Sequence record: AP019418.1 | Length of the DNA stretch: 64,000 nucleotides | Reading direction: 5' to 3' (one strand) | Shown: positions 45,745-64,000 of the stretch, in pieces | Layout of the letters: every line of letters starts with the position of its first letter | How positions within the stretch are numbered: the stretch's first letter is position 1 | Position numbers and translations under genes: made by a program | Notes under the pieces: generated by a model | Database searches by the model: none | Seen by the model: the letters and a program-made list of their open reading frames with translations, nothing else | Told to the model about the DNA's origin: nothing

Positions 45745-45746
45745 AT

Positions 45747-46312: not shown

Positions 46313-46334
46313 AAGAGTAGCTTCGGCTACTCTT
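46313..46334 (+). terminator. terminator after tRNA pair
   Basis: AAGAGTAGC-TTCG-GCTACTCTT then TT. Confidence 0.85.
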
Positions 46335-46389
46335 TTATGTTGCCATGGGTTATCTTATGAATTAAAATGATTTACTTGAGAGCACACTC

Positions 46390-48194: not shown

Positions 48195-48354
48195 AATTAG
48201 TAACTTTGATAGTTTCTAATAAGATTAACTACACGTTATTTACATAATGTCATAACAAGAAATAAATAATACTCAGATTGTAATAATATGTAGTTATTAC
48301 ATATCTATATTAGGTTGTCAGTAACTCATCTCTAATATAAAATCGCCATTTAAT

Positions 48355-48430
<76 letters not shown>

Positions 48431-48477
48431 ATTCATAGTTTTAGATTTAGTTATATTTCACTACTATGTAAACTATA

Positions 48478-48499
48478 AAGGCAGCTAATGCTGCCTTTA
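48478..48499 (+). terminator. terminator
   Basis: AAGGCAGC-TAAT-GCTGCCTT then T. Confidence 0.75.
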
Positions 48500-48561
48500 T
48501 GTCGTCTTGTAAAAGTACCCAATAGTTGAATCTTATAGCTGAATACAAATAGGGTAAAGAC

Positions 48562-48747
48562 ATGTCACTTAAAGCATTGCAAGATATAGTTAGTAGTGTT
48601 CCTACAAATGAACAAAAGGAACGATTAGTTAAAGTTCGGAAAACGATGGAAGAGCTAAATGAGTCTATTAAGAATCAGATTCGTAATAAACGACCTAGTC
48701 AAGCTCTTCTCGACAAAACGATAAACTGGGGTACCAAGTATGGCTAA
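48562..48747 (+). CDS. small coiled-coil protein
   Basis: 61 aa, overlaps next gene. Confidence 0.6.
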   Translation: MSLKALQDIVSSVPTNEQKERLVKVRKTMEELNESIKNQIRNKRPSQALLDKTINWGTKYG

Positions 48748-49030
48748 GACATTAGTTCGTGCAAAGCTGATTACTGAGGCTGGTCAATGGATGTCGTCTG
48801 ACTGGGAATGTGGTTTCCGTGCATGTCGATTCGTGAAACTTGGTAATGATCATGTAAACATAAAAGACTTTGAGGCTATGATCACGGCATTCGAAGTTGG
48901 TGACATGTTAGTGATTTGGCCAAATGGGCTTAGAACTTCGTATAGTGTGGATAATTTCAATAAGTACTTTTCCCATATCAAAGATGAATACCATGAGACT
49001 GATCTCCGTCCACTCTTTTACCCCAAGTAG
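48740..49030 (+). CDS. small phage protein, same EA.QW...GD..I...FNK family as 37209..37598
   Basis: TEAGQW, EVGDMLVIWPNG, DNFNKYF. Confidence 0.65.
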   Translation: MAKTLVRAKLITEAGQWMSSDWECGFRACRFVKLGNDHVNIKDFEAMITAFEVGDMLVIWPNGLRTSYSVDNFNKYFSHIKDEYHETDLRPLFYPK

Positions 49031-49246
49031 TTGAGCTTATGATAACTATATTCGTGTATAAATACATTACATTCGTTATACCCTTTAATTGATTGAAATC
49101 AAGCTACATAAAAGTGATTGAATGGTCCATGTAGGTGATAATTTTAATAAAGGTAAAGGATTTATCAGAGAATATCTCAGTGCATTTAGGTATTTTATCA
49201 CTCGCCTATCTAAATCACATAAAGCCCTTTACCGAGGAATGTGAGA

Positions 49247-49342
49247 ATGTTGGTTGCGATTGATAATACTGGGACAGAATATGATGTCGACCCAACTGAT
49301 GAAGTAGACGTAATGTTTGTATTTAGACCCACACTAAAATAA
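49247..49342 (+). CDS. 31-aa small ORF
   Basis: GAGGA 8 nt before ATG; MLVAIDNTGTEYDVDPTDEVDVMFVFRPTLK. Confidence 0.4.
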   Translation: MLVAIDNTGTEYDVDPTDEVDVMFVFRPTLK

Positions 49343-49501
49343 CTTTATATGACTTAATACCCCTCTATATAGAGTGGTCTATTTATAAGTAAAATTATAC
49401 ATAGAGTTAATATTATTTGTAGATTAGTTCTACACATAACTCAACTTGAAACCGGGTGTTAATAAAATTTAACACTACGGAAAACATAAAGGTGTATAAA
49501 A

Positions 49502-50131
49502 ATGGCTTTTCATTTTACTGAAGTAGATTTAAATGATTTTATCAATGAATCAGGTAAAGACTTAAAAATAAATGTTGGTAAACAAACACTAGCAGTTTAT
49601 GATATCGATAGGCTAAATATTGTTAATTCAACTATTAATAAACTAGTTTATAATGAACCTATAAGTGAAGAACACATAGATGCATCACTTACAGATAATT
49701 CATTAAAAGAGCTTAATGATTATTTACTAAATGTTGGTGTTACTGAAAGCGCTAAAATGATGATTGATGCTGTGTTAGAATTAAGCGATTATCATAAAAG
49801 TGATGAATACTTTAACCCAATGATGTATAAATTAAAAAGTATGCACACTAAAAATACAGATGGTGTTTATTTGATATTTTTACCAACGCCTACTATCGAT
49901 GATCAAATTAACACCATGCAAGGGTATATTATCAATAAATCCGGTAATCTCATTAGGACTACTGTACAGTCATGGCGATTTGAGAAAATTGAATTCAAAG
50001 ACTTAGCCAAACATGATAGACGTTGGTTATTTATTGAATATTACATTAATGTTAAACAAACGAAAAATAATATAATCAAAGAGCAACAAGATGAATTAAC
50101 TAAATTTATTTATTATAGTACTCTAAGTTAA
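49502..50131 (+). CDS. hypothetical protein
   Basis: 209 aa, AAGGT RBS. Confidence 0.7.
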   Translation: MAFHFTEVDLNDFINESGKDLKINVGKQTLAVYDIDRLNIVNSTINKLVYNEPISEEHIDASLTDNSLKELNDYLLNVGVTESAKMMIDAVLELSDYHKSDEYFNPMMYKLKSMHTKNTDGVYLIFLPTPTIDDQINTMQGYIINKSGNLIRTTVQSWRFEKIEFKDLAKHDRRWLFIEYYINVKQTKNNIIKEQQDELTKFIYYSTLS

Positions 50132-50155
50132 AACAAATAAAAAAATAAATATAAG

Positions 50156-50178
50156 AGCTAGCCCCTAATGGGCTAGCT
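50156..50178. terminator. bidirectional terminator
   Basis: AGCTAGCCC-CTAAT-GGGCTAGCT between convergent genes. Confidence 0.8.
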
Positions 50179-50188
50179 TTATGTTATC

Positions 50189-50326
50189 TTACTCTGCTAC
50201 ATCTTTTACATCAGGTTTATTATTCCAACGTACTGCTCTCGCAATACCATACGTAAGAATAAGAGCACCTACGGTGCCAATAGTGGTGCTAATAATAATG
50301 CCAAGAGTTTTTGGATCAATATTCAT
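50189..50326 (-). CDS. 45-aa single-TM protein, not in ORF track
   Basis: MNIDPKTLGIIISTTIGTVGALILTYGIARAVRW...; AGGA RBS; own promoter and terminator. Confidence 0.75.
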   Translation of the reverse strand: MNIDPKTLGIIISTTIGTVGALILTYGIARAVRWNNKPDVKDVAE

Positions 50327-50382
50327 ATTTAGTATCCTATTTACAATTAATAGAAAATATTACTTTTAGTAATATCAAGTTA

Positions 50383-50399
50383 ATGATATACTGTTTAAA
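50383..50399 (-). promoter_or_regulatory. phiKZ-type early promoter (variant)
   Basis: TTTAAACAGTATATCAT; flanks match the 33.2 kb promoter. Confidence 0.65.
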
Positions 50400-50473
50400 T
50401 ATGTTTGAATATAACTTTATTTATTATAATAAATAAAATAATACTTTCATATACACTATATGTAGAAGATTCC

Positions 50474-50550
50474 GCCGCTATAGCTCAGCTAGGTAGAGCA
50501 ACGCACTTGTAATGCGTAGGTCCTCCGTTCGATTCGGAGTGGCGGCACCA
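50474..50550 (+). tRNA. tRNA-Thr(TGT)
   Basis: GCCGCTA/TGGCGGC acceptor, CGCA-CTTGTAA-TGCG, CCA. Confidence 0.97.
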
Positions 50551-50628
50551 AATTTACTGAGGTTTAAACTATTCTTAAATATATTAGTTAGGATGGGATT
50601 GAACGCGAAAGACTCAGTAAATCATATT

Positions 50629-50649
50629 GCCCCTCCATATGGAGGGGCT
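50629..50649 (+). terminator. terminator
   Basis: GCCCCTCC-ATAT-GGAGGGGC then TT. Confidence 0.8.
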
Positions 50650-50679
50650 TATGTTTGTCATTAATCAGGAAAATATAAA

Positions 50680-50856
50680 ATGAGTCATCTATTATTTATC
50701 ATCCAAGAATACATTACTAATAAATTTGAGGTAACACGAATTGATATGAAGCCAGGTAATAGAATGTTACGTGTATGTTTATACGGTCAACATGAGGGAA
50801 AAGGTTTCGTCCGTATAGATTTATGGTCAGTTGGTTATCGCATTACAAAGAAATAA
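50680..50856 (+). CDS. 58-aa small protein, not in ORF track
   Basis: AGGA RBS; MSHLLFIIQEYITNKFEVTRIDMKPGNRMLRV... Confidence 0.6.
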   Translation: MSHLLFIIQEYITNKFEVTRIDMKPGNRMLRVCLYGQHEGKGFVRIDLWSVGYRITKK

Positions 50857-50898
50857 TACTCCAGATTATTTAATATGTATTAATCAAAGGAGTTTATA

Positions 50899-51309
50899 AT
50901 GAGTAATGAAACTAACTATCTAGGTTATGAATGGAAAACAGATATAACTACTTCAAATCTTAATAGAGTGGTTGATTTATATACACTTGAATTAACATGG
51001 TTAAAAGAAGATTTTAATGATACTCTTTTTATAAAGTCTTATAAAGTGCTAGAGGGTCTATTAGAGGAACCGTCTAGGGCAATCCATGATGATACAGTAA
51101 CCGTTCAAGATCAATTAGATGAATTAAATACTGTTTTTAAATTAGTATTTGGAAAAGATAATGACGTAGAGTTATCAATTAATAATGATTCAATTATTGT
51201 GATCGGTGCTACAGATACAACTAAAGAAAAATTAGAAGCAGAGGTGCGTGAGTTTGCATATAGAAAATCATTAATTGATGAACGTTATCCAGACATTGTA
51301 ACGGATTAA
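50899..51309 (+). CDS. hypothetical protein
   Basis: 136 aa, AAGGAG RBS. Confidence 0.75.
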   Translation: MSNETNYLGYEWKTDITTSNLNRVVDLYTLELTWLKEDFNDTLFIKSYKVLEGLLEEPSRAIHDDTVTVQDQLDELNTVFKLVFGKDNDVELSINNDSIIVIGATDTTKEKLEAEVREFAYRKSLIDERYPDIVTD

Positions 51310-51389
51310 AATACTTACAGCTATCTAGTATGTAACTAGGCGGATTGCCATTTGTAAATTATCTATTTAATCAAACTGAGGAAATACTA

Positions 51390-51779
51390 ATGAAACAATT
51401 CTTTCAACTACTTCTAAGCCTACTTTTCAAACTACCGGTTCTATCATATTTTGCTGAGAAGAAACGACTAGAGAAAGAGAAAAAGGAAGAAGAAAAGCGT
51501 CAGCAAGAACAACGTCAAAAAGAACTACTTGACGAACAGCGTCGCGAACAAGAAGATCATTATCGAAAGACGGCTTACGATCGCCTAGCAAAACTTATTC
51601 ATACTCGGTGGTATGATGAGTTTAATGCATATGAAAAGAAACTAGTTGATCTTGCCGTGTCTACTGGTAAAGCAGTTAGTGTTAAGTATGGTAAAGTTAC
51701 TAAGATGCAACACCCTCATCAATTTAAACTACTTAATGATTGGCTGGATGATATTCCAGTAGAAGATTTTTCTAAGTGA
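51390..51779 (+). CDS. protein with N-terminal hydrophobic anchor and charged coiled coil
   Basis: GAGGA RBS; MKQFFQLLLSLLFKLPVLSYF then E/K/Q/R-rich helix. Confidence 0.7.
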   Translation: MKQFFQLLLSLLFKLPVLSYFAEKKRLEKEKKEEEKRQQEQRQKELLDEQRREQEDHYRKTAYDRLAKLIHTRWYDEFNAYEKKLVDLAVSTGKAVSVKYGKVTKMQHPHQFKLLNDWLDDIPVEDFSK

Positions 51780-51805
51780 GTTTAAATAAAAAAATAAAGA
51801 CATAT

Positions 51806-51828
51806 CCCCTCTCCATACGGAGAGGGGT
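51806..51828. terminator. bidirectional terminator
   Basis: CCCCTCTCC-ATAC-GGAGAGGGG between convergent genes. Confidence 0.8.
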
Positions 51829-51839
51829 TTATGCCGTAA

Positions 51840-52520
51840 TTATACACTTACTTTGATAAGATTTTTAATATCAGTAAAATGGGTATATGTTGCCTTTTTA
51901 TCTTTGTGAACCAGTAAGCAACAGGTGCCTTCATTTACTGTATTGGTTTGTTTTAATGGGATATTTAAAGCATATTCAAACAGATCATCCATCCAGTTAA
52001 ATACCATGAACTTACTGATAAGGACATGATCGAAATCAATTAATCCAATAAACGAATCGATCTCAAATTGATAATACTCTACAACCATTTTAGACCATTC
52101 TTTGTTTATTGCCTCAATGACATTAGGATTATTTATTTTATTAAATAACTCAGTGCGTTCCTTAGTAGGTAAACTGAGGTAATAATTAATATTACTCCTA
52201 ACGATATCTGGATTAGTGATATCAATTTTTTCTGGTAAGTTATATTTACTATCTACATAATTCTTAGTTTCTGGCGTCATTCTCCAGCAACCATAATCAG
52301 CAGTAGTACTTGATAGATCTACTCTAGCCTCTACTACTTTAGAAAATACATTTACATATAAATTAACAGATTCACATATATCAGGTCTGATTGAATTAAA
52401 GTTTAAACTTTTAATAAGACCCCTAACTGGTCGAGTACCAATTAGACAATGCAATTCAAGCTTAACATTTTCCTCTTTAGCCATCTTAAATATATCAGCA
52501 AAACTGAGCTTTTCTACCAT
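51840..52520 (-). CDS. hypothetical protein
   Basis: 226 aa, AAGGT RBS. Confidence 0.7.
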   Translation of the reverse strand: MVEKLSFADIFKMAKEENVKLELHCLIGTRPVRGLIKSLNFNSIRPDICESVNLYVNVFSKVVEARVDLSSTTADYGCWRMTPETKNYVDSKYNLPEKIDITNPDIVRSNINYYLSLPTKERTELFNKINNPNVIEAINKEWSKMVVEYYQFEIDSFIGLIDFDHVLISKFMVFNWMDDLFEYALNIPLKQTNTVNEGTCCLLVHKDKKATYTHFTDIKNLIKVSV

Positions 52521-52670
52521 TTAGAATATACCTTTTATTAATTGGACAAATAGATTAGATACACATAGCAATAGAATAAACCATAAACCTAGTCTTTGTA
52601 ATTTATCTATACGCTTAGCTTTTTGTTTCCTCTTTAATCTAACTAATAATGTATTTTTAATATCATTCAT
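52521..52670 (-). CDS. 49-aa basic protein with C-terminal TM, not in ORF track
   Basis: MNDIKNTLLVRLKRKQKAKRIDKLQRLGLWFILLLCVSNLFVQLIKGIF; TAA abuts next ATG. Confidence 0.55.
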   Translation of the reverse strand: MNDIKNTLLVRLKRKQKAKRIDKLQRLGLWFILLLCVSNLFVQLIKGIF

Positions 52671-52689
52671 TAAATTATCTCAGATTTTT

Positions 52690-53220
52690 TTAGACGGTGT
52701 ATAAACCTTCAGTATTACATGTTGTTATGATGTTGTAAAGACGATGCCAATAGCGATCATACGTATTTTTACGTTTGTAGCTATTGGTGCGGATGACTAG
52801 ATTGGCGACCCAGTGATTCTGATCAATGGTCTCATGTAGATGCCCGAAATAAGCCCCCAGTTCAATTTCGAATGGGATCTTACACTCACGCCCCTTACAC
52901 ATTGCTTCACGTAATAAACGCATTGCAGAATTCTCTGCATTAGTGTCTTTAAATAAAAGACTAATGTATCCAGGGCTACCACCAGTTTCTTCATCAACAT
53001 GGCCTGAACAACAATAAATAGTTGCAATATTGGTGAATTGGTTAAACCATTTAATCAATGGTCTACATGCTTCATCAATAAGATCTTCATATTCAGGTTT
53101 ATACATTACTTTAACAGTATCATCTGCACGTTGTTTCACATGATGAAAATATTGCTCCCAATTTACATTAGTGTAATATAGCATATCCATATTAGAATTA
53201 CTCATACAAATCAACCCCAT
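52690..53220 (-). CDS. TYW3/Taw3-like fold protein
   Basis: IDEACRPLIKWFN...TIYCCSGH...GYI resembles the TYW3 N-terminal IDxxIxxL...N...TTSSCSGR motif. Confidence 0.5.
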   Translation of the reverse strand: MGLICMSNSNMDMLYYTNVNWEQYFHHVKQRADDTVKVMYKPEYEDLIDEACRPLIKWFNQFTNIATIYCCSGHVDEETGGSPGYISLLFKDTNAENSAMRLLREAMCKGRECKIPFEIELGAYFGHLHETIDQNHWVANLVIRTNSYKRKNTYDRYWHRLYNIITTCNTEGLYTV

Positions 53221-53942
53221 ATGTTATTGGCATATTCGCGGTCATTGAAAATGCGGGTAAGATCCATCCGCTTTTGAATGCGCGCTAGTATCCATTTTAG
53301 TTGTTTAGTTGATAGTTCTTGATTTTGCTTGTACTCACCTGTAGCATGGATGTAATAATCAAATTTACGACTTACAGTAGTAGTATGTGCACATGCAATA
53401 GCAAATGCTTCAAGTGCAGTTAGTTTGGTTGATCCATTATCATTACAATTAGGGATAAACTCAAGTACACTATTAACTGCATCTACACCACTACCCAAAT
53501 GAGCCCAATCTTTCTTGGTGATGTTGATACCCATGTCTTTAAGAATAACTGTATATATGTCACCATTCTCCATAGTGAACATCATAGAAGTATTACCATT
53601 AAACAACCTGCGTTCTATGACTGGCAAGATATTTACTTCAACTTTAAACCAATCAGCTAAATCAACACCTGCGGTAAGGGCATTCAATAGATCATAAACA
53701 TTATCTATAGTTCCAGCAAAAGCCATAGTTTTAACACGTTTGCCTTGCCAAGTAACAGTCGGATGAAAAATTATCTTGTGGCAATCATTGTAATATACAT
53801 CTACACCTTCAGCTTTAGCAGTTAGATCAATATAACCGTTATCTAATACTGGAAGTCGCCCAATGCTATCAGTTGCATTATTCCGCTCAATTAATAGGCA
53901 GTCTGCAATCATGACTTTACCATCATTTACGATATATGTCAT
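53211..53942 (-). CDS. HslV/proteasome-beta-like Ntn hydrolase
   Basis: AAGGGG RBS before M-T-YIVNDGKVMIAD; HKI, FAGT, HLGSG and ALEAFAIA motifs. Confidence 0.65.
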   Translation of the reverse strand: MTYIVNDGKVMIADCLLIERNNATDSIGRLPVLDNGYIDLTAKAEGVDVYYNDCHKIIFHPTVTWQGKRVKTMAFAGTIDNVYDLLNALTAGVDLADWFKVEVNILPVIERRLFNGNTSMMFTMENGDIYTVILKDMGINITKKDWAHLGSGVDAVNSVLEFIPNCNDNGSTKLTALEAFAIACAHTTTVSRKFDYYIHATGEYKQNQELSTKQLKWILARIQKRMDLTRIFNDREYANNIWG

Positions 53943-53986
53943 TTTCACCCCTTATAATAAAATAAATAGGCTTAAGCGAAATAAAG

Positions 53987-54006
53987 CCCTCCCCGAAGGG
54001 AGGGCA
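53987..54006 (-). terminator. terminator
   Basis: GCCCTCCC-CGAA-GGGAGGGC. Confidence 0.8.
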
Positions 54007-54108
54007 TTATCAATAGGTGGGATCTCGGCGGCACCTTCATTTGCGGACGGGAACGCTGAAGGGAGATAGTCCGGGAGATCCCGATTTGGGTATTCTTTAC
54101 ATATGGTA

Positions 54109-54489
54109 TTACTGCAAGTATTTGTTCCCCGCAGTATAATCACCATTGATCCAATTTTTGATTACAACACTGATCCCTTCATTTTCTTTAACGGTAACCC
54201 CCAACTCAAGATCGATTGATTGATAAGCTACAGCCGCCAGTGTTAACCGAAGATAAACGGATCCATCTTTTTCGATATCGTAGGATACTACGAACCCGTC
54301 TTGTAGATTTTGTAGCTGGAATGTATTAGCATGTTGTGGGTGGAGACGATCCATATTGTACTCGACGACATCTAGTAGATATTGCCGAGCATCAGCAGCA
54401 TTATCAAATCCGAGATCGCACAGACCGATCGGATAGCGAGCTTGCGTGCATGTAACTTTCATAGATACTACACGATGTTGTTTGCACAT
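54109..54489 (-). CDS. hypothetical protein
   Basis: 126 aa, GAGGA RBS. Confidence 0.7.
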   Translation of the reverse strand: MCKQHRVVSMKVTCTQARYPIGLCDLGFDNAADARQYLLDVVEYNMDRLHPQHANTFQLQNLQDGFVVSYDIEKDGSVYLRLTLAAVAYQSIDLELGVTVKENEGISVVIKNWINGDYTAGNKYLQ

Positions 54490-54515
54490 TATATTTTCCT
54501 CTTAGATGTCAAAAA

Positions 54516-54537
54516 CCCTCCCCGATCAGGGGAGGGT
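54516..54537 (-). terminator. terminator
   Basis: CCCTCCCC-GATCA-GGGGAGGG with U-tract on minus strand. Confidence 0.8.
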
Positions 54538-54630
54538 ATCTCATTGGTACTTCTTCAGCAAAACTGAAACTAAGATAAAAGAGCAATCGTAAAGGAACTA
54601 CATAGAATAGTGTATTTCTTTTACTATTTT

Positions 54631-55044
54631 TTACACAACCTCTTTAGATGGGGGTTCTTTATGAATCCAGTCTAAAGTTGTTGGTAAACTATTATCTGAT
54701 CTGAAGGTACACACCGTCCGGAACCGAGAGTGATCAACTACAGATAATTGCCCGTTAATCGCAGCCTCATATTGCCTACACAACTTCACACACCTTTTCT
54801 CTAGATCAGTTGGTTCGTAACCTTCTTCTCTTGGTTCAGTGTATGGTCCATCCCAAAAGAATATTAATCTAAGATCAATCCCAGATTTATACTCCGCTTG
54901 GTATGAATATTGATGAACATCAAAATCATCTAATTCTTCAACTAGATGTGATGTTATTGTTCTAGGGTGTTCATGAGTTAATTCACTGTATATATGTTTA
55001 TTTCTAGGGTTTTGTAAATCAACTACGATAAGTTGACTAGTCAT
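54631..55044 (-). CDS. hypothetical protein
   Basis: Start revised to MTSQLIVVD directly after the upstream stop. Confidence 0.65.
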   Translation of the reverse strand: MTSQLIVVDLQNPRNKHIYSELTHEHPRTITSHLVEELDDFDVHQYSYQAEYKSGIDLRLIFFWDGPYTEPREEGYEPTDLEKRCVKLCRQYEAAINGQLSVVDHSRFRTVCTFRSDNSLPTTLDWIHKEPPSKEVV

Positions 55045-55045
55045 T

Positions 55046-55699
55046 TTAACTTTTATCCAGATGTCTATTACGAGTGCGTTCCACTGCTGTAGGTTCGACA
55101 GTGGCTCGCGGTAGATAAGTAATCTCCGGGAAAGTCTTATTAAGAGCATCTTCAATTAGCTCTTTAGCAATCTCTGCATCGATGTAATGGTTTAGAATAA
55201 TACCACGATGATACAGGAAGAAGCTGTATTCATCATAACCATGGCGAAGACTTACTTTACCACGATACCCACCATAGGTTAGAGTATCTTCGTTAATTTC
55301 ATTCCGATAAATATCAAGTTGGATATTATTTTGAAGATGCATTTGAATGAAGTCATTACTATCACCGCCGAATAGGGTTGGTCGTTTCCGACCAGTAACA
55401 ACATCTTGGATGGAATCCATTAGTCGGTTAATGTCTGTTTCTAATCGTTGGATATCACATTGAGAATTCATTGCTTCATGGAAACGAGTTACAACTGCAT
55501 TGAATTCTTCTTCAGTCCAACCACTGGTACGTTTTTCATAATCAACAATGATAATACCGAACCAGGCATAACCGTTAGAATGTTTTACTTTAACACATAG
55601 ATGAGGTACATTATCAGCACCTGACTGATGGTTAACAGTGTAATTATTATTACGGCTGATTACTAGTTTGATAAAAGGTAGACTAATGATTGACGCCAT
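55046..55699 (-). CDS. hypothetical protein
   Basis: 217 aa, AAAAGGA RBS. Confidence 0.75.
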   Translation of the reverse strand: MASIISLPFIKLVISRNNNYTVNHQSGADNVPHLCVKVKHSNGYAWFGIIIVDYEKRTSGWTEEEFNAVVTRFHEAMNSQCDIQRLETDINRLMDSIQDVVTGRKRPTLFGGDSNDFIQMHLQNNIQLDIYRNEINEDTLTYGGYRGKVSLRHGYDEYSFFLYHRGIILNHYIDAEIAKELIEDALNKTFPEITYLPRATVEPTAVERTRNRHLDKS

Positions 55700-55847
55700 G
55701 GAAATATTCCTTTTGTATTTTTTAAATTAAAGTAGGAGTTATTATTGAGTTTCAACTCAATACATCAATAACTCCAGTATGTTTTCAAAATTAAATACAT
55801 GTATTTACAGTTACATTGTAACCAGTTAGTTTTGCCAACAATACAAA

Positions 55848-56036
55848 TTAGCGAACCTGTTCGATTTTTTCAGAAACAATGAAAATATGTGCAATACGAT
55901 CCTCATCAACATACCGATATCGAAATGAGGTATAACTAGATGACACATCCGTATCGTTTAAATAGGTGATATTAAAATCATCTACTTCCCTACCATTAGC
56001 AGCCGCAACGGTATTTAGAATGTTGAGTAGACTCAT
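55848..56036 (-). CDS. small hypothetical protein
   Basis: 62 aa, AAGGA RBS. Confidence 0.65.
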   Translation of the reverse strand: MSLLNILNTVAAANGREVDDFNITYLNDTDVSSSYTSFRYRYVDEDRIAHIFIVSEKIEQVR

Positions 56037-56059
56037 TTTACAGATTCCTTTTTAGTATA

Positions 56060-57586
56060 TTAATATTTCAATAGACTATTGATAAAAGCATTAGGGTCAT
56101 AACGGTTATTTGAAAAAGCCGCCATTACATCACACCCTGGCTGATCTTTAAATCTGATATCTTCAGGAATATCGAAGTCAGGGAACATTAGTTTAATATA
56201 CTCCCTAACTTCTTGATCTCGTAGATATGGAATCTCCACCATGTAATCAACGCGACCTTTCCTTAGAAGTGCTTTATCAATATTCTCAGGATGGTTTGTA
56301 GTTAGAATGGTCATAGTCTCATCTAGTGGAACAATGCCATCTAGCCCATTTAATAGAGCTGACAAAGTTAATCCGCTAGCTGGTTGTTCATACGTGATTC
56401 CATTCTTCATGCACTTCTTTAATTTCCACCATCGGCGAATTGTGGTAAATAATGGATCTTTTTCATCGGCCCATTTTGAAACACCCAGTTCAGCCATAGC
56501 ATAAGCACTTATCCCAAAACCTTGATCATCGCTATTTTCATCAAAGATATAGATGGTGTCATTAAACCCAACTACAGAGTATCCTTCATAGTCATCTTTA
56601 AGATCAACCCATGCAGACGGATATTTTTCAATTAAATCAATAAAAGAATATTTCCTCTCTAATTCCTTTATCTCTTTATCTAGTTTTACAGGATCATTTA
56701 AAACACGATCTTTAACTGCCGGGGTATCATCGAAATCTTCAATTAGAAGAATATTACCTTTAGGTAGTGTAGTAAATGCCCGCCTAAGACTATCATTGGT
56801 CATAGAGGCTAATGACAGTGCACTAACATTTTTATTAAAATGTGAGGCAATCGCTTTACTGATTGAGGTTTTACCAGTACCAGGAGGACCTGTTAGAACA
56901 CAAGTGAATTTATAGGGTAGTCCACGATCATCGTACCATTTCCGATCAGAATAGAATTCTTCAATCTTATTAAGGAATTCTTCTTTGATCTCTTTACGCA
57001 AAATCACCGTGTTGATATCGCGTTTAGTAACTTCAATCTCATTGCCCCAACGGTTACCATCCCAATGTGAAATAGTCAGACCCCTTTCATTTGGGCGCCA
57101 ATGGTAAGCATCTACTAAATCAATAATTAGTTTACTACTCCTAGATAATCCACGGATAGTAATATCCATTTGATCTCGACTGGCATTTTGACTATCCCGG
57201 CGTGCTTTTACAAACCAGAATAACCTACCTTTAAACAGAAAGAAATGTAAGCCAAAACCAACACCAATTTTCTGTTTAGTTGCACTATAACTTTGCTCAT
57301 CAACATTAGTTGAAAAACGTCGATTAAATCCAGCTAATGGCTGCTTAATATACCATTCCATGAAACAATCAAAGTTCTTCTCGTTCAGCCCATTACCCAT
57401 GTTGGTAATATGTAGACTAACTGTAAACTGATTTAATGCGAACCTAGCTAGTTTACTTGGTAAGCCTCTTAGAGTGGTCCAGAATAAACCACCAATTGCC
57501 ATTCCGATAGCTCCACCCATAACCATATTCTTCTGAGAGATATCGATGAACATGGCGTAATATTGCAATAAGGTTTCTATAATCAT
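56060..57586 (-). CDS. Bcs1-like membrane-anchored AAA ATPase
   Basis: N-terminal TM, BCS1_N-like region, KWYDDRGLPY, GPPGTGKT, LLIEDFD, LTLSALLNGLDG, TTNH, LLRKGRVD. Confidence 0.88.
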   Translation of the reverse strand: MIIETLLQYYAMFIDISQKNMVMGGAIGMAIGGLFWTTLRGLPSKLARFALNQFTVSLHITNMGNGLNEKNFDCFMEWYIKQPLAGFNRRFSTNVDEQSYSATKQKIGVGFGLHFFLFKGRLFWFVKARRDSQNASRDQMDITIRGLSRSSKLIIDLVDAYHWRPNERGLTISHWDGNRWGNEIEVTKRDINTVILRKEIKEEFLNKIEEFYSDRKWYDDRGLPYKFTCVLTGPPGTGKTSISKAIASHFNKNVSALSLASMTNDSLRRAFTTLPKGNILLIEDFDDTPAVKDRVLNDPVKLDKEIKELERKYSFIDLIEKYPSAWVDLKDDYEGYSVVGFNDTIYIFDENSDDQGFGISAYAMAELGVSKWADEKDPLFTTIRRWWKLKKCMKNGITYEQPASGLTLSALLNGLDGIVPLDETMTILTTNHPENIDKALLRKGRVDYMVEIPYLRDQEVREYIKLMFPDFDIPEDIRFKDQPGCDVMAAFSNNRYDPNAFINSLLKY

Positions 57587-58368
57587 ACTAGCATCCCTCT
57601 GGATAGCTTAGGAAAATATTGTCCACAGATCATGTATTCACGTTCTAGAAAATCTAGAGTATGACTTTCAAATATTTCACCTACATCTTTACCATAGATT
57701 TCCGTATACCCATTTTTGAATACGGCCATTACATAAACATCAGACATAGTCATGCCGTAGTTATAAATTTGATTGTCTCTGTATTTTGGATGAAATAGGT
57801 CATATAAAAAACGAGTCATTGAACTATTGGCAACAGTTGTCACCCCTTTCTGCTTTAAGGCATAACGTACTTGTTTAACCACATAGTTAACTTTAGAGCG
57901 CTCGCCAAATACCGTCAGTTTATCTACATTGCAATTACGATATCCCATAACATCAGGATTAGCTATCACGGTGTGTTTTGGAACACGTACATCAAAGATA
58001 ATGCCATTAGGGGATAGAATAATCTTTTCATGGTTAAATAGAACATGAAATAAATGTCGTTCTGGTTTAGTGATTTTGATACTTAACCCAATCACTCCAC
58101 TAATCTTTCTTTCTAGATCTTCTAGTGACTGCATCACCATGTGATATTGATTGAAGAAAGCATTGTTCTTATATTGATCTAATTCAAAGTATTTCCAACT
58201 TCCACGAAAATGAATAGCATGGCTTTTGGTATAACCTTTAGTTAATCGACACTTGAGTTTGTCAAACCAGCTTTCAAGATAACTCTCGACTGTAAAACCA
58301 AGTGGGTTATTATTAATAAGTTTATTGGAATATGATAAGCTAAATCTGTACATAGTTCGACGATGCAT
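57583..58368 (-). CDS. hypothetical protein, paralog of 58425..59297
   Basis: AGGA RBS before MHRRTM; overlaps AAA start; shared motifs with upstream gene. Confidence 0.7.
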   Translation of the reverse strand: MHRRTMYRFSLSYSNKLINNNPLGFTVESYLESWFDKLKCRLTKGYTKSHAIHFRGSWKYFELDQYKNNAFFNQYHMVMQSLEDLERKISGVIGLSIKITKPERHLFHVLFNHEKIILSPNGIIFDVRVPKHTVIANPDVMGYRNCNVDKLTVFGERSKVNYVVKQVRYALKQKGVTTVANSSMTRFLYDLFHPKYRDNQIYNYGMTMSDVYVMAVFKNGYTEIYGKDVGEIFESHTLDFLEREYMICGQYFPKLSRGMLV

Positions 58369-58397
58369 TTTATATTCCTGCCAAATAAAGAAAAAAT

Positions 58398-58419
58398 AAA
58401 GGGCTCCGAAGAGCCCTTT
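58398..58419 (-). terminator. terminator
   Basis: AAAGGGCTC-CGAA-GAGCCCTTT with U-tract on minus strand. Confidence 0.85.
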
Positions 58420-58424
58420 ATGTA

Positions 58425-59297
58425 TTAGATTTTTACAGACCAACTTTGCTCGAATTCCTGATATAGGAAATTGTCTGACGCATTATCCCAATTTTCTCGA
58501 TCAGTTACACCATAATAATGGAATTCTAGTTCAGTAGGTCCACCAACAAAACCATTCTTAGCATAGCTATAAACTTTGCCATTGGTTAGCTTAATCAGTG
58601 TATCCACATAGAAACTATTACGGTTCCATATTTCATTGTGGATGTACTTAAATACCACACTGTGGATATACTTAAATTGCGCACTTGGTTTTCCGAGTAC
58701 ACTCCAATAGAATTTACGGATACCTATTTCGGTCTTGAAATTAAACTCTCCGTTGCGAATGTTGTTAGAAACAATACGTGCCAGTTTATTAACCCGATTT
58801 TCTTCACCGATTAGATAGATCCCGGAAACACTACATCCATCTCCTATTGATCCATTATTAACTAGTGGATCAACACCATATTCATCAGTGAAAATGGTTT
58901 TGATAACCTCTTTACCTTCTCGACGCACTAACATATTCAGGTGACCATCTTCGATATATGACATATGGCTAGGCTGAATATATTCACTTGTATCGACGAT
59001 AACATCATTCGCCATTACATTAAACTGTAGATGGTTTACCAGATCACTAATACCTTTAAAACGAATGGCTTGGTTCGCTGTATTTAGATCGACATACACC
59101 ACGACATCAATAATGCCTTGTTTTAGTGATTTGTCATCTTTGTCAGTAGTTGTATCAATTTTTACGTAATTTTGATATAGTTCACTAAAACAAGATATGA
59201 TGTCATCATGTAGTTTAATTACATCAGATCCATTTCGTTCAAGCGCTTTAAGCGATACGTTAAAACCAATACGAATTTTATTAGAACGACGTGCCAT
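58425..59297 (-). CDS. hypothetical protein, paralog of 57583..58368
   Basis: 290 aa, AGGTG RBS. Confidence 0.75.
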   Translation of the reverse strand: MARRSNKIRIGFNVSLKALERNGSDVIKLHDDIISCFSELYQNYVKIDTTTDKDDKSLKQGIIDVVVYVDLNTANQAIRFKGISDLVNHLQFNVMANDVIVDTSEYIQPSHMSYIEDGHLNMLVRREGKEVIKTIFTDEYGVDPLVNNGSIGDGCSVSGIYLIGEENRVNKLARIVSNNIRNGEFNFKTEIGIRKFYWSVLGKPSAQFKYIHSVVFKYIHNEIWNRNSFYVDTLIKLTNGKVYSYAKNGFVGGPTELEFHYYGVTDRENWDNASDNFLYQEFEQSWSVKI

Positions 59298-59338
59298 GGT
59301 TATATCACCTATGTTAAATTAATGAATTATTTATTCAA

Positions 59339-59701
59339 TTACCGTACTACATCTGTGATTAGAATAAGTTCACCATCACTATTGATAACACTATAGCTTT
59401 TTACAATTTCGATGCGCTTACTAATAATCTTATTCTCTAGATCTACTTTTACGATATTAACACGAATTACCTTATTCGATTGATCATGCATTTCTTTAAA
59501 AATGCATTCGATATTTTTACCAATGACAGCTTTTAATTTTTCAATGCTGTCAATGGATGAATATTTAAAACTATATGCTTCTGCCAGGGTTTTTGCATTA
59601 CCCACAACCGTAGTTAGGGTACCCCAATAATCATAAACATACAACGCAGTATCACTATTGGGATTATCGATAATTTCAATTATAAAATCCACTTGTATCA
59701 C
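59339..59701 (-). CDS. early hypothetical protein
   Basis: GTG start, AGGAG RBS, early promoter upstream. Confidence 0.65.
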   Translation of the reverse strand: MIQVDFIIEIIDNPNSDTALYVYDYWGTLTTVVGNAKTLAEAYSFKYSSIDSIEKLKAVIGKNIECIFKEMHDQSNKVIRVNIVKVDLENKIISKRIEIVKSYSVINSDGELILITDVVR

Positions 59702-59728
59702 TCCTATTAGTTTATTGATAGTACACTT

Positions 59729-59745
59729 GTAATATAGATCTTAAA
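59729..59745 (-). promoter_or_regulatory. phiKZ-type early promoter
   Basis: TTTAAGATCTATATTAC, identical to 7649..7665. Confidence 0.8.
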
Positions 59746-59756
59746 TAAATTATGAT

Positions 59757-60221
59757 CTAACCATTTAAAATAGATAAAGCCTCTATATGCCAATGGTGTA
59801 TTAGTTCTTCTTTACTAATAATATTATTGAAGTAGTTTAACCGATGTGATACCATTAATTTAGAATACATATCGACTTCACTACTTACCTTAATCACCCC
59901 AGTCTCTAATAATTGCAGAGAGCCAACATACGCAAATAAAGTTGGTTTTAAATACCAGTGTTCCCTATATTGTTTTTGATCAGGTACATTTCCTATAATG
60001 TAGTCAGTAGAATTACTTCGGTATGCGTAAATAGTTGATTTAGAACCAAGTAAATTAAGATCGATATCATAACTCCCGCTTTTAGCTGCAATACATTCAA
60101 TAACTGATGGGGCCACACATATACGGTTGGTTACACTGTCTTCGCCATCAGCTCTATTACTTGGAATATATGGCCTTAATAAAACATAATCCCCAAGGTA
60201 TACTGTCGATATGTGATACAT
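59757..60221 (-). CDS. ADP-ribosyltransferase-fold-like protein
   Basis: MYHIS...LRPYIP...GEDSVTNRICVAPS...IYAY...VPD...REHW. Confidence 0.5.
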   Translation of the reverse strand: MYHISTVYLGDYVLLRPYIPSNRADGEDSVTNRICVAPSVIECIAAKSGSYDIDLNLLGSKSTIYAYRSNSTDYIIGNVPDQKQYREHWYLKPTLFAYVGSLQLLETGVIKVSSEVDMYSKLMVSHRLNYFNNIISKEELIHHWHIEALSILNG

Positions 60222-60236
60222 AATTAACCTATTTAA

Positions 60237-60764
60237 TTAAAACAGATAACGCTCTGTTACTGAACGATATTGTGACATGATGTTTAATGGATCAACATCC
60301 ACTGGTGCTTTAGTGACAGTTAAGCGAGCACCTTTTAAAAATTCACCAATATCTAATTTCCTTACAGTAACATCATGGATAGTGTTTTTCGTAATCCACT
60401 CAGTATCAATGCTATTGTGAGGATTATTATTCTTAATCCATTTGTCAGAGTCCCTAAATGGAATGGTATAAACATACACAACCATTTTTAAAATATCACT
60501 TTTATCGATATTATTTTGACAATAGATTGTAATATCCCTATCAACAGTAGCATATCTATCACTATCAAATAACTTTTCGATAGCGCTACCAATACCTAAA
60601 TAAGATGCATCTTTTTCAGATGACGTTGCATATAGGTATTGGTTAGACTCAATACCATCCCACATAACAAGTTCACCAGATCTTTTAAATCCTGGCATTA
60701 ATTCATCTTGTTTATAAAGAGAACCATGGTAAAGTAATTCTGGTTTATTCATAATAAAATCCAC
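60237..60764 (-). CDS. Arr-like ADP-ribosyltransferase-fold protein
   Basis: LYHGS...LMPG...YLYATSS...VYVYTI...NPHN...TEW (H-Y-E-type arrangement). Confidence 0.55.
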   Translation of the reverse strand: MDFIMNKPELLYHGSLYKQDELMPGFKRSGELVMWDGIESNQYLYATSSEKDASYLGIGSAIEKLFDSDRYATVDRDITIYCQNNIDKSDILKMVVYVYTIPFRDSDKWIKNNNPHNSIDTEWITKNTIHDVTVRKLDIGEFLKGARLTVTKAPVDVDPLNIMSQYRSVTERYLF

Positions 60765-60798
60765 TATGCTTTATAAGAGTTATGGTTATCAATTAACT

Positions 60799-61155
60799 TC
60801 AAGGTAGTAGTGTGGCAGTATTGAAGTGATTGGTTACTGCTTCGATCAGCATTTGCTCGATGTTGATTTTGTAGTATTCTGGTTCTTCGTTCAATTCCCA
60901 AATAATAGTCGCACGTAATAGTGCAGGTGCTATGAATCTAACTACCTTACCATGTGTGTCAAACTCTACATTGAACATTGCATATTGTTCAGTAGTATGA
61001 TTTTTATAGAAAATGAAATTACCAGCGTAACTGCGAACCTCTATTTCACCATGAATACTGGAGTAGGTTTCCTGGTGGAATACTTTACCTTTAAGGCGTG
61101 TATTCTCTTCAATGATATTTACCAATTCTTTCAATTTGTCTTTATCTAGTTGCAT
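60799..61155 (-). CDS. hypothetical protein
   Basis: 118 aa, AGGA RBS. Confidence 0.7.
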   Translation of the reverse strand: MQLDKDKLKELVNIIEENTRLKGKVFHQETYSSIHGEIEVRSYAGNFIFYKNHTTEQYAMFNVEFDTHGKVVRFIAPALLRATIIWELNEEPEYYKINIEQMLIEAVTNHFNTATLLP

Positions 61156-61195
61156 TTGTAGGTTCCTATTAATAAATGTATACGATGGATATCTT

Positions 61196-61558
61196 TTACG
61201 ATTTCCGGTGCTTATCCATATCTAGTTTTATATCAGTATATATCTTGAATCTATTAGATAGGCTATCCATATCTACGCGCAATGCCCGAATATGCATATC
61301 AGTATCTTTTGGTTTACCTTCAGACTCCCATACAGCTTCTGCGATAACAAATGCTACATTGTTCAAATAGTATTCGACTTCATGTTCATCGAGTAAAAGA
61401 GCATCATGGAAACCAATACGTGATAAAATGGCATAATCACGCTGATTAACATCTCTCCAACCTTTACGTACTAAATAACTTTTACCAATTCCACCTTTGC
61501 CACTTTCACTAATAATTTCTACAATGAACTTATCATGCCATTTATAATCCACAATCAT
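61196..61558 (-). CDS. small protein with ParA/MinD-type Walker A
   Basis: SGKGGIGKS and ALLLDE in only 120 aa. Confidence 0.6.
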   Translation of the reverse strand: MIVDYKWHDKFIVEIISESGKGGIGKSYLVRKGWRDVNQRDYAILSRIGFHDALLLDEHEVEYYLNNVAFVIAEAVWESEGKPKDTDMHIRALRVDMDSLSNRFKIYTDIKLDMDKHRKS

Positions 61559-61565
61559 TACTCCT

Positions 61566-62099
61566 TTATTTAATCAGCTCCATCACTAGAGGAATGGATA
61601 GGCTTATGCCATTAGCCATTTTAGCTAGGATACTATGGACATCGTTTGCTTCTTGGACATTGGTGCAAGGTATAGAGATAGCGTCACCATAGTAAGGACT
61701 GTAGTTAATACGGTTGCCATATACACCACTTACAAAACTATAATCTAATCCATCCGTAGTGGTCATAATAACTACAACATGATCATCCCCAACCATACCG
61801 GATTCCAGATAGTCACATAGTTCCAGTTTTTGTTGCATACCTCGTTGACAGATCCACACTTCATGGTATCGATGATAGGGATATGGGGCACATGCTACAT
61901 CATTTTCACTAACGAAGTACATAGTCCCCCAGTTGTAAGATTGGAATTGGGTTGTTTGTTTATGGGCTTCCCATACCTCCTCCATACAAAAGGTATGTTT
62001 ATTAACCCATAGACCATCGTTATTAAGACTATCAACGATTCCATCGCGAACACGTACTACACGAAGTGTTTTTGCCATTTTTAATACCCCTGAATTCAC
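61566..62099 (-). CDS. hypothetical protein
   Basis: 177 aa (start possibly MAKTL at 62078). Confidence 0.7.
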   Translation of the reverse strand: MNSGVLKMAKTLRVVRVRDGIVDSLNNDGLWVNKHTFCMEEVWEAHKQTTQFQSYNWGTMYFVSENDVACAPYPYHRYHEVWICQRGMQQKLELCDYLESGMVGDDHVVVIMTTTDGLDYSFVSGVYGNRINYSPYYGDAISIPCTNVQEANDVHSILAKMANGISLSIPLVMELIK

Positions 62100-62110
62100 G
62101 GAGGAATCAC

Positions 62111-62572
62111 TCAGTAAACACCATTAACAATAGCCTCGCGGAAACGAGACCATTCGGTTTGTCCAATTGCGAATACACGTTCTTTAGGGCGCCATAGATG
62201 ATCACCGCAGTCAAGACCCAAGTAAAGCATATTGGCTTTCCAATGATTGCGATGAACACGTAAATTAGCTGACGTACTGAACTCACGCATTACTTCTTTT
62301 ACATTAAGATGAGTTAGTGTATCGCTAATCATACCTGACAAACTGATACCAATTGCTTTACGAACTCGGATCAGATCGGCAGTCATTTTACGCCAAGTTA
62401 TCAGATGTTCATAGTACTCATCTGGTGTCATGTTGTTTTTATAGTTCAATGCACCTGGAGTCATTGACATCCAGTTAGTGAATTGCGATGTCATGTAATA
62501 CATCCAATCACTATTATGACGGAGTTCTTTAAGCTTCTCTTGTATTACGATGTTAGTAGTTGCTTTGGGCAT
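62111..62572 (-). CDS. hypothetical protein
   Basis: 153 aa, GAGGGA RBS. Confidence 0.7.
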   Translation of the reverse strand: MPKATTNIVIQEKLKELRHNSDWMYYMTSQFTNWMSMTPGALNYKNNMTPDEYYEHLITWRKMTADLIRVRKAIGISLSGMISDTLTHLNVKEVMREFSTSANLRVHRNHWKANMLYLGLDCGDHLWRPKERVFAIGQTEWSRFREAIVNGVY

Positions 62573-62702
62573 TATTAATCCCTCAGGGCTTGATGGATGA
62601 AGTTACTTTAGACAATTAGCGAAAAACTTCGGACGATGTACCTTCAACTATTTAACGAACTTATCCAGTCCGGCTTCACGCACGAGCTTTTGTTCCTTAG
62701 AC

Positions 62703-63140
62703 TTAGCCATTTACGTATCCCTCGTCAGATACATAAGTGCGTTCAGGGCTGAATACATACTTGATTTTATTGATCACAGCTGTAATATAAACCTGATATT
62801 CTTTTGAAATAGATTCCATCAGTTCAATAGATACGGAATTTGAACTCTGAATAAGCTTACTTACCTTCTCTAGTTCATCAAGGTCACTACCGCAAATTAT
62901 ACCAACATCACTGAAGCTGATAACTGGATAGTGTTTCCAAATATAAGAACGCAGTTTACCAAGATGAATTACTTGAATTGTTTCATCGCACCATTGTTTC
63001 TTTTTCTTATTGTAGTATTTAACATGACGTTCGATGAAGACGCGATTACCAGAAACAGAGGGGTATGTATTCAGTGCATAACCATACGTATGGGCGGTGT
63101 TATTTGGATCTTGTCGCCATTTTGGAATAAATGCTTTCAT
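62703..63140 (-). CDS. hypothetical protein
   Basis: 145 aa, AAGGA RBS. Confidence 0.7.
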   Translation of the reverse strand: MKAFIPKWRQDPNNTAHTYGYALNTYPSVSGNRVFIERHVKYYNKKKKQWCDETIQVIHLGKLRSYIWKHYPVISFSDVGIICGSDLDELEKVSKLIQSSNSVSIELMESISKEYQVYITAVINKIKYVFSPERTYVSDEGYVNG

Positions 63141-63167
63141 TTGTATTTTCCTTTTTACGAAATAGAA

Positions 63168-63186
63168 GCCCTCCCGAAGGAGGGCA
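63168..63186 (-). terminator. terminator
   Basis: GCCCTCC-CGAA-GGAGGGC. Confidence 0.8.
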
Positions 63187-63198
63187 ATTATACTATTA

Positions 63199-63513
63199 TT
63201 AAATTACGTATCTAGCTACTTCTTTTAATTTCTCGCCGGGCGTGGCCAGATAATCGACATTATATTTAATAGCAATTACACCAACGTGTTCTTTTCTCAA
63301 TAGTTGTTCTACCTGATCACATAATTTATAAATAGTTCCATCTTCTACATCTTCGTATAATGGATATTGGCTATAAATATTATCAGGTGTAAGTACAGAC
63401 AGTTTCAATTCCCCGTCTTTATCAATGACTGGGTGATATGTCTGTTTAAGACCTTTACAATGATAGTGATAGGTAATGCGCTGCTGTTTAGTGGTCATGT
63501 AAAGATACCTCAA
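63199..63513 (-). CDS. hypothetical protein
   Basis: 104 aa, overlap with upstream stop. Confidence 0.65.
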   Translation of the reverse strand: MRYLYMTTKQQRITYHYHCKGLKQTYHPVIDKDGELKLSVLTPDNIYSQYPLYEDVEDGTIYKLCDQVEQLLRKEHVGVIAIKYNVDYLATPGEKLKEVARYVI

Positions 63514-63959
63514 ATAAACCGTTGGGTAGTTCCGTCTTTAAAGACAGTTAGTTGATTAACATCTTTCAATGAATTATCTGCAATATTCTTAGCCAATAGC
63601 AGTAGATCATTGTGATATGTTTTAATGAGAACTTTAAGCCTCTCCCTCTGTTTATAGCGGAAACCTTTATTAATCACAGTAACTCCATCCGGGTTATTTT
63701 TATAATTCAGTACAGTGATTGGTGTATTCGGTACAAAGACAGCTAACTCATCATCGAATACAATATAAACCATCACTTTATAATTATTAACCGATTCTTG
63801 GAATTGTTGTGTGATTACATTATAGTCTTTTGTGCGATGACTAAGAAATAGCTCTCTATTAGCTCGGCAGAAACTATGTCGTGCTTCTTTATCAGCACTC
63901 ATAACAGCGATACCACGGATAATGAATTTATTATCTAAGGTATATTTTCTTTGAGACAT
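63510..63959 (-). CDS. hypothetical protein, possibly 5'-truncated by window edge
   Basis: Frame stays open upstream of the ATG to the end of the window. Confidence 0.6.
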   Translation of the reverse strand: MSQRKYTLDNKFIIRGIAVMSADKEARHSFCRANRELFLSHRTKDYNVITQQFQESVNNYKVMVYIVFDDELAVFVPNTPITVLNYKNNPDGVTVINKGFRYKQRERLKVLIKTYHNDLLLLAKNIADNSLKDVNQLTVFKDGTTQRFI

Positions 63960-64000
63960 TGCATAATCGACTACATCAACATCACCGCCGAATAGTACGG

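Follow-up and report, generated by a model that had tools for sequence, protein, structure and literature searches.

Why would a bacteriophage carry a relative of Bcs1, and what could such a protein do at the membrane of the host? Mitochondrial Bcs1 (yeast Bcs1, mouse and human BCS1L) is an AAA translocase that forms a heptamer in the inner membrane and transports the Rieske protein in its folded state; no other AAA machine is known to take a folded protein through a membrane without threading. The question is raised by a 64,000-nucleotide stretch of sequence record AP019418.1 (hereafter the window), in which positions 56060–57586 of the minus strand hold a gene that was originally predicted to have the full Bcs1 architecture, to belong to a jumbo phage and to move a folded protein across the host inner membrane or the membrane of an early vesicle, or to dislocate membrane proteins. 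Here, we show that this gene encodes a true Bcs1-family ATPase, and we describe two features that set the version found in the lineage of phages phiKZ and PhiPA3 apart from most of its phage relatives: a fast-evolving insert of ~115 residues at the position of pore loop 2 and a candidate partner gene, gp285, the family of which occurs beside long-insert versions of the ATPase only.

A Bcs1-family ATPase in a phiKZ-like phage

The locus holds one intact and uninterrupted open reading frame (ORF), the 508-residue product of which is 98.2% identical to PHIKZ286 (gp286) of phage phiKZ. Window positions 50000–64000 match PA02, a Pseudomonas phage of 279 kb, with 100% identity and many phiKZ-like phages with 97–98.5% identity. 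The ORF and its assignment to a jumbo phage both stand. Compared to phiKZ, the gene is a recombination mosaic: its first ~600 nt are 80–99% identical, with a synonymous divergence (dS) of 0.6–0.8, and the remaining ~930 nt are 100% identical.

All motifs listed in the original prediction are present in the translation (Table 1), and the assignment to the Bcs1 family is borne out: the protein combines a helix at its N terminus with a Bcs1-specific domain and an AAA domain that retains all catalytic residues, and it has a Bcs1 fold. In a search with Pfam profile hidden Markov models, BCS1_N (PF08740) matches residues 33–194 with 44.1 bits (cutoff 28.1) over profile positions 2–182 of 182, and the AAA domain scores 61.5 bits in two stretches, residues 230–288 and about 407–470. 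The top match in a sequence search of the PDB is yeast Bcs1 (6sh3, E = 4e-38); mouse Bcs1 is found with E = 1e-27, and both align in two pieces (query residues 27–287 and 403–469). Across 108 homologs, G233, G236, G238 and K239 of Walker A are invariant, as are the sensor-1 residue N431 and residues R442, G444 and R445, while E283, D284 and D286 of Walker B are nearly so. Pore-loop-1 residues 257–266 (LSLASMTNDS) align with LSENNLTDD of yeast Bcs1 and include no aromatic residue.

The AlphaFold2 model of the monomer, built from the alignment of 108 homologs, has a mean predicted local distance difference test (pLDDT) score of 86.6 and a predicted template modelling score (pTM) of 0.77, and is confident for residues 1–290 and 405–508. 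When this model is compared to the PDB with Foldseek, the top 17 matches are all Bcs1 chains (E = 6.5e-27 to 3.4e-16), the target TM-scores (template modelling scores) of which peak at 0.73 (full-length chains) and 0.80 (AAA domain). Bacillus subtilis YjoB comes next in the ranking, followed by threading AAA proteins. The gene encodes a true Bcs1-family AAA ATPase, and its membership in the family is secure.

The phage ATPase shares with mitochondrial Bcs1 its domain order (putative transmembrane helix, Bcs1-specific domain, AAA core and helical lid), its catalytic motifs and the short non-aromatic pore loop 1, and Bcs1 is its best match, in both sequence and fold, over nearly the full length. 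The two are nonetheless distant, with only 16–22% identity in the fold alignments, and the N-terminal tail that precedes the hydrophobic segment is much shorter in the phage protein (about 20 residues). Furthermore, Pseudomonas has the Tat (twin-arginine translocation) pathway for its own Rieske protein. As for the lid, AAA_lid_BCS1 (PF25426) is absent among the 25 Pfam matches listed for the phage ATPase, although bacterial homologs match it; the model is highly confident for the C-terminal helices of the phage ATPase, and its fold alignments with Bcs1 span about 475–526 columns. YjoB (PDB id: 7w42), the next-best match in fold and sequence and the name under which some phage records annotate their homolog, is a much weaker one (fold E = 7.6e-15, 14% identity).

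Other AAA identities were considered and rejected. NCBIfam models of FtsH, CDC48 and PAN score 28–50 bits against cutoffs of 500–1008 and cover only residues ~407–480, and the missing aromatic pore loop likewise speaks against a threading unfoldase (FtsH, Cdc48/p97, proteasomal Rpt). The labels 'FtsH' and 'cell division protein' carried by records of some homologs are therefore misnomers. Matches to defence AAA ATPases (IetA/IteA, TRIP13-like) in PADLOC and NCBIfam are confined to ~65 residues around the P-loop (best E = 5e-11), and the phage ATPase scores 28 bits with the IteA model, the cutoff of which is 510.

A predicted N-terminal membrane anchor

Residues 21–39 are the most hydrophobic 19-residue stretch of the protein. 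They form part of a long helix (residues 21–54) in the AlphaFold2 model and align with the transmembrane region of yeast Bcs1. A similar Gly/Ala-rich hydrophobic segment is found at the same position in the 108 homologs (median Kyte-Doolittle hydropathy of 1.59), and in 86 of the 108 Lys and Arg are more numerous on its C-terminal side. The conserved segment and its Lys/Arg-rich C-terminal flank predict that the helix anchors the protein in the Pseudomonas inner membrane, such that its short N-terminal tail is on the outer side and its ATPase part is cytoplasmic. This predicted topology would be the equivalent of that of Bcs1 in mitochondria, in which the ATPase is on the matrix side.

A fast-evolving insert at the pore-loop-2 position

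The matches to Bcs1 and to the AAA domain are split by an insert (residues 288–402) between Walker B and the next conserved helix, a feature that the original prediction does not mention. In the AlphaFold2 model, this insert is located between strand 3 (residues 279–282) and helix 3 (residues 408–415), i.e. at the site of pore loop 2. The distance from D286 of Walker B to the conserved LxLSxLLNxLDG helix is 118 residues, and distances of 113–118 residues are found only in phiKZ-like phages, PhiPA3 and a few metagenomic relatives. In most phage members of the family, the same gap is a Pro/Ala/Glu-rich low-complexity linker of 20–60 residues, and distal and eukaryote-like members have a compact pore loop 2 of 11–15 residues (11 in a fungal relative).

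The insert evolves much faster than the rest of the ATPase. It is 68.7% identical to that of phage SL2, with a nonsynonymous divergence (dN) of 0.189, compared to 95–98% identity and a dN of 0.008–0.021 in the flanking domains. Its dN is thus about 10–20 times that of the flanks, and its dN/dS of 0.15 indicates purifying selection. Relative to PhiPA3, the insert is 31% identical, and the Bcs1-specific and AAA domains are 56–72% identical. It contains no Pfam domain, even at an E-value of 10, and tblastn does not find it anywhere other than in orthologs. The insert of the phiKZ/PhiPA3 clade is possibly folded. As the known AAA fold places the pore-loop-2 site at the cytoplasmic mouth of the ring, the insert would face that mouth in a Bcs1-like assembly.

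An intein was ruled out as the nature of the insert, which has neither a Cys/Ser start nor an HN end. A metagenomic homolog of 807 residues (P0027) does carry an intein-like insertion of ~345 residues with a LAGLIDADG_3 domain elsewhere, inside Walker A (GPPGTGK, the insertion ending in HN, then TS).

A candidate partner gene tied to the long insert

The ATPase gene is preceded by gp285, the TGA stop codon of which overlaps the ATG of the ATPase, an arrangement that suggests translational coupling to this lineage-specific gene. Genes of the gp285 family lie directly upstream of the ATPase in five long-insert lineages, including PhiPA3, HHBS36_1 and two metagenomic contigs, and beside none of 10 short-insert homologs; the family was located only directly upstream of long-insert Bcs1 genes. 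In phage SL2 (L092:2095–4524), gp285 is absent, the orthologs of gp284 and gp286 lie only 57 nt apart, and a divergent insert is kept. In another long-insert contig (L096), the upstream gene is either unrelated to gp285 or beyond detection. Since the gp285 family accompanies long-insert genes only, and these genes form a single clade (see below), the insert and its partner appear to have arisen together. No known domain or annotated match was found for gp285 in Pfam, PHROG or the PDB, and its relatives in the protein database amount to one other cluster.

Most members of PHROG 7485, the phage family to which the ATPase belongs, share the layout of putative transmembrane helix, BCS1_N and AAA domain and lack a gp285-like neighbour. 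What distinguishes the phiKZ/PhiPA3 clade, which nests inside this family, is the combination of an insert of ~115 residues under purifying selection with a coupled partner gene. The insert and the tie of the gp285 family to long-insert versions are new here: full-text literature searches found no mention of the insert, its rapid evolution or its coupling to the gp285 family.

Table 1. Features of the ATPase gene and its surroundings, given as window positions and as residues of the 508-residue product
Feature	Window position	Strand	Residues	Description
Whole ORF	56060–57586	−		508 residues, 58.5 kDa; ortholog of PHIKZ286, Bcs1-family AAA ATPase
Gly/Ala-rich hydrophobic segment	57470–57526	−	21–39	putative single membrane anchor; predicted N out, C in
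MVMGGAIGMAIGGLFW			21–36	hydrophobic segment as read in the translation
Bcs1-specific (BCS1_N) domain	57005–57490	−	33–194	PF08740; pLDDT mostly >90
AAA core, first half	56726–57001	−	196–287	Walker A, short non-aromatic pore-loop-1 region, Walker B
GPPGTGKT			233–240	Walker A
LLIEDFD			280–286	Walker B
Insert at pore-loop-2 position	56381–56725	−	288–402	lineage-specific, acidic; ~115 residues, 13.5 kDa, isoelectric point 4.8
AAA core, second half, and C-terminal helical lid	56063–56380	−	403–508	sensor-1 N431, R442, R445; pLDDT >90
LTLSALLNGLDG			406–417	
TTNH			429–432	
LLRKGRVD			440–447	
PHIKZ285 ortholog (gp285)	57583–58368	−		candidate partner protein, 261 residues; stop overlaps ATPase start (ATGA)
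Terminator- or attenuator-like site	58396–58421	−		GC-rich hairpin, then T run; between gp284 stop and gp285 start
Candidate early-type promoter	59729–59736	−		TATATTAC preceded by TTTAA and AT-rich DNA; upstream of gp283.1
phiKZ-type intrinsic terminator	53986–54005	−		hairpin GCCCTCCC..GGGAGGGC, then TTTAT; after gp288

A possible role at the inner membrane

Homology is what suggests transport or dislocation of a folded protein by the phage ATPase. Taking the insert and gp285 into account, the reading that we tentatively favour, with less than even confidence, is that of an accessory, early-expressed Bcs1-type ring in the inner membrane that handles a folded client and uses the insert and gp285 as a docking module. 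The ATPase would form a Bcs1-like ring, probably a heptamer, and ATP-driven changes of this ring would allow it to hold a folded client, and to move or remodel it, where the membrane faces the cytoplasm, without threading an unfolded chain. Each subunit of the phiKZ/PhiPA3 lineage would bear a fast-evolving domain of ~115 residues at the cytoplasmic mouth of the ring, where the insert, together with gp285, may serve to dock or select either the client or a large partner such as the ribosome. With its gene in an accessory arm of the genome and downstream of an early-type promoter motif, such a ring would aid early infection (accumulation of ChmA) and would not be needed for plaque formation on PAO1.

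Distribution of the family

The original prediction went too far in calling Bcs1 not a standard phage function. The ATPase belongs to PHROG 7485 (phrog_7485, E = 8e-182; function unknown), tblastn finds its relatives in 156 of 50,697 phage records, and an exhaustive HMMER scan returns 782 clusters (50% identity) at E ≤ 1e-30. The listed carrier records are 142–440 kb long, nearly all of them >220 kb, and their hosts include Pseudomonas, Serratia, Klebsiella, Erwinia, Ralstonia, Brevundimonas, Vibrio, Salmonella, Caulobacter, Pectobacterium and Rhodococcus, among others. BCS1 orthologs in jumbo phages have already been reported by Iyer et al. 2021 (PMC7824862), and this part of the finding is not new.

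The same fold is found in the predicted structures (BFVD) of many giant eukaryotic viruses (Klosneuvirus, Catovirus, Mimivirus, Medusavirus, Pandoravirus, Marseillevirus), with one or several proteins in each, some of which are annotated as BCS1. The family is common to large viruses of bacteria and of eukaryotes.

Bacterial chromosomes encode the same architecture (transmembrane helix, BCS1_N, AAA domain) in proteins of about 410–430 residues, which form a large group in Rhodobacterales and are scattered in Betaproteobacteria and Acidobacteriota; genome contigs were searched with a profile seeded with an alignment of 20 closer rows. These proteins are 23–31% identical to the phage ATPase and fall into separate clades; their pore loop 2 is compact, and AAA_lid_BCS1 is among their Pfam matches. 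The homolog of Paracoccus methylarcula (transmembrane helix, BCS1_N, AAA, AAA_lid_BCS1) lies directly upstream of a complete QatA–QatB–QatC anti-phage system (L021:5692–11549). A search seeded with this protein returned 5235 proteins at E ≤ 1e-10, and the named top matches are from Rhodobacterales. In an Acidobacteriota metagenome-assembled genome, a homolog (L014:5968–8903) is followed by a TROVE and VWA (Ro60-like) gene.

The maximum-likelihood tree unites PA02, SL2, PhiPA3 and HHBS36_1 in a single long-insert clade (support 97–100%) inside a phage/metagenome clade (99%) that is apart from the bacterial groups. Of the phylogeny against bacterial and eukaryotic homologs that was proposed as a check, the bacterial part yields a separation from the phage clade. 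The eukaryotic side is represented by distal AAA proteins, one of them a fungal entry, rather than by full eukaryotic Bcs1, and the tree is unrooted as to the relation between phages and eukaryotes.

This distribution bears on the early vesicle as the site of action. The ATPase could be pictured as an importer in the lipid vesicle that surrounds the injected genome, moving folded proteins in; its topology would fit if the vesicle lumen equals the periplasm, and both the early-type promoter motif and an effect of knockdown on ChmA (see below) agree with action at that stage. However, phages without a nucleus, such as phiTE and CcrColossus, also have members of the family, so a vesicle-specific role is unlikely to be a general one. 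Moreover, the Chimalliviridae core-gene table of Prichard et al. does not list phiKZ gp286, the gene is non-essential, and no route is known that would bring a newly synthesised protein to the vesicle membrane. Taken by itself, the importer is in our estimate highly improbable.

Published experiments and what they imply

Full-text searches on phage Bcs1 and on PHIKZ286 turned up no published test of what a phage Bcs1 does. Three published data sets do include the phiKZ protein. Fossati et al. found that PHIKZ285 and PHIKZ286 co-fractionate and cross-link with ribosomes, PHIKZ286 to rplL, rplK and rplJ (the L7/L12 stalk) and PHIKZ285 to rpmC (PMC10449902). As their lysates were detergent-free and membrane complexes, e.g. 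FtsH–HflKC, also eluted at high molecular weight (PMC10449902), co-elution with ribosomes is weak evidence in the case of a membrane-anchored ring; the cross-links are stronger. Knockdown with antisense oligomers by Gerovac et al. 2025 (Table 1 of that work) had no effect on plaque-forming or colony-forming units, and its reduction of ChmA was scored as 'effective' ('++').

These results suggest that the protein might instead be a ribosome-directed factor, with gp285 and gp286 sitting on the L7/L12 stalk and either tethering translating ribosomes to the membrane or tuning the translation of early phage messages, and no transport involved. The cross-links and the drop in the early protein ChmA upon knockdown speak for this, and the lineage-specific insert and its partner could supply the new contact. 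Yet in detergent-free size-exclusion chromatography an anchored ring on small membrane fragments would co-elute with ribosomes in any case, no ribosome-binding domain was detected, and most homologs have neither the insert nor gp285, so this cannot be the function of the family as a whole. The stalk protein L7/L12 is, besides, abundant and flexible and cross-links readily. We regard a ribosome-directed factor as unlikely. That the seven pore-loop-2 domains and gp285 dock the membrane ring onto the L7/L12 stalk, and thereby couple early translation to a membrane site or to the transfer of a folded protein, is a more speculative idea to which we attach little weight; we know of no AAA ring that links the ribosome to a membrane in this way in bacteria or their viruses.

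In a phage transposon screen, 20 and 55 insertions were recovered in PHIKZ286 and 13 and 32 in PHIKZ285, compared to none in essential genes, and PHIKZ286 is located in the largely non-essential orf184–orf304 arm of the genome. The ATPase gene is dispensable in PAO1.

A gene that can be lost in a laboratory host and that resides in an arm proposed for host-interaction and defence-related genes might function in host takeover or counter-defence. The ring would then extract, hold or block a host inner-membrane protein (e.g. a defence effector or a component of secretion), with the insert as the interface of an arms race. The rapid evolution of the insert, the recombination mosaicism through the gene and the one bacterial homolog beside QatABC are in line with such a role. 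Conversely, no match to a known anti-defence family was found, the PADLOC matches are weak and limited to the P-loop region, positive selection is not shown by a dN/dS of 0.15, and the defence-island example is a single case. Altogether, a counter-defence role seems rather unlikely.

The tolerance to many insertions also bears on the proposal, made from comparative genomics by Iyer et al. 2021 (PMC7824862), that the family acts as a membrane-proximal chaperone of virion assembly that loads folded proteins into the head. Its presence in large-genome phages with complex virions agrees with this proposal, but most virion genes do not tolerate insertions in this manner. Furthermore, the gene lies behind an early-type promoter motif among non-structural neighbours, and the homologs of other phages adjoin nucleotide-metabolism and replication genes. 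The capsids of phiKZ-like phages are filled at the phage nucleus and not at the membrane. Such a chaperone is very unlikely in our view.

The favoured reading, an accessory membrane ring with a docking module, has several observations to contend with. The sole interaction data implicate ribosomes rather than a client in the membrane. Nothing resembling a Rieske protein, and no other obvious cargo, was found in the gene neighbourhood. Nor is any gene conserved beside the ATPase across phages: an all-against-all BLASTP comparison of flanking genes from 11 phages found no conserved neighbour, save for gp287 with one relative. The putative anchor is of borderline hydrophobicity (mean Kyte-Doolittle value of 1.51). 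The docking role is conjectural, as the insert is modelled as helices and a hairpin with low pLDDT, the model of gp285 is unreliable (pLDDT of 46.9), and the insert of SL2 persists in the absence of gp285. Finally, seven inserts of 13.5 kDa each at the mouth of the ring could block the entry of a folded client. All of these points weigh against it. The existing experiments neither show nor exclude transport.

Gene neighbourhood and expression signals

The ATPase is part of a run of same-strand genes of unknown function that extends from gp283.1 to gp288. Upstream of this run is a TTTAA(N4-5)TATATTAC site (Table 1), which we take to be the early promoter consensus of phiKZ (presumably that of Ceyssens 2014). 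It is this promoter-like motif that suggests early timing for gp285–gp286. Seven sites in the window share the motif, all of them on the minus strand and intergenic (2466, 7649, 13462, 33239, 35090, 35594 and 59729). They are located about 45–75 nt upstream of minus-strand start codons and look like a family of phage promoters, and all 10 exact matches to TATATTAC in the window are on the minus strand. At the other end of the run, the hairpin GCCCTCCC..GGGAGGGC agrees with the conserved terminator motif of phiKZ that is given in PMC10914365.

The gp284 ortholog (58425–59297, minus strand) shows a weak similarity to the N-terminal domain of Legionella SidC, which at 18 bits (E = 0.0013) is below the cutoff of 25, as well as a faint match to the gp285-family profile, both probably due to chance. 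Seven tRNA genes (Leu-taa, Pro-tgg, Met-cat, Asp-gtc, Asn-gtt twice and Thr-tgt) are clustered at window positions 44606–50550 on the plus strand, opposite to the surrounding early-type genes.

Implications

Of the phages that carry a Bcs1 relative, phiKZ is the most tractable, as transposon mutants, antisense knockdown and interaction proteomics exist for it, and the insert and its partner gene provide a specific experimental handle. Because the gene is dispensable in the laboratory host, a core function is a less likely outcome of such work than an accessory or conditional one. The large chromosomal family in Rhodobacterales raises the question of the origin of mitochondrial Bcs1. The branch of the family in big phages, giant viruses and bacteria is large and diverse; the role of any of its members would show whether folded-protein transport exists outside mitochondria, and the function of a phage Bcs1 could bring to light a new step that jumbo phages take at the host membrane during infection.

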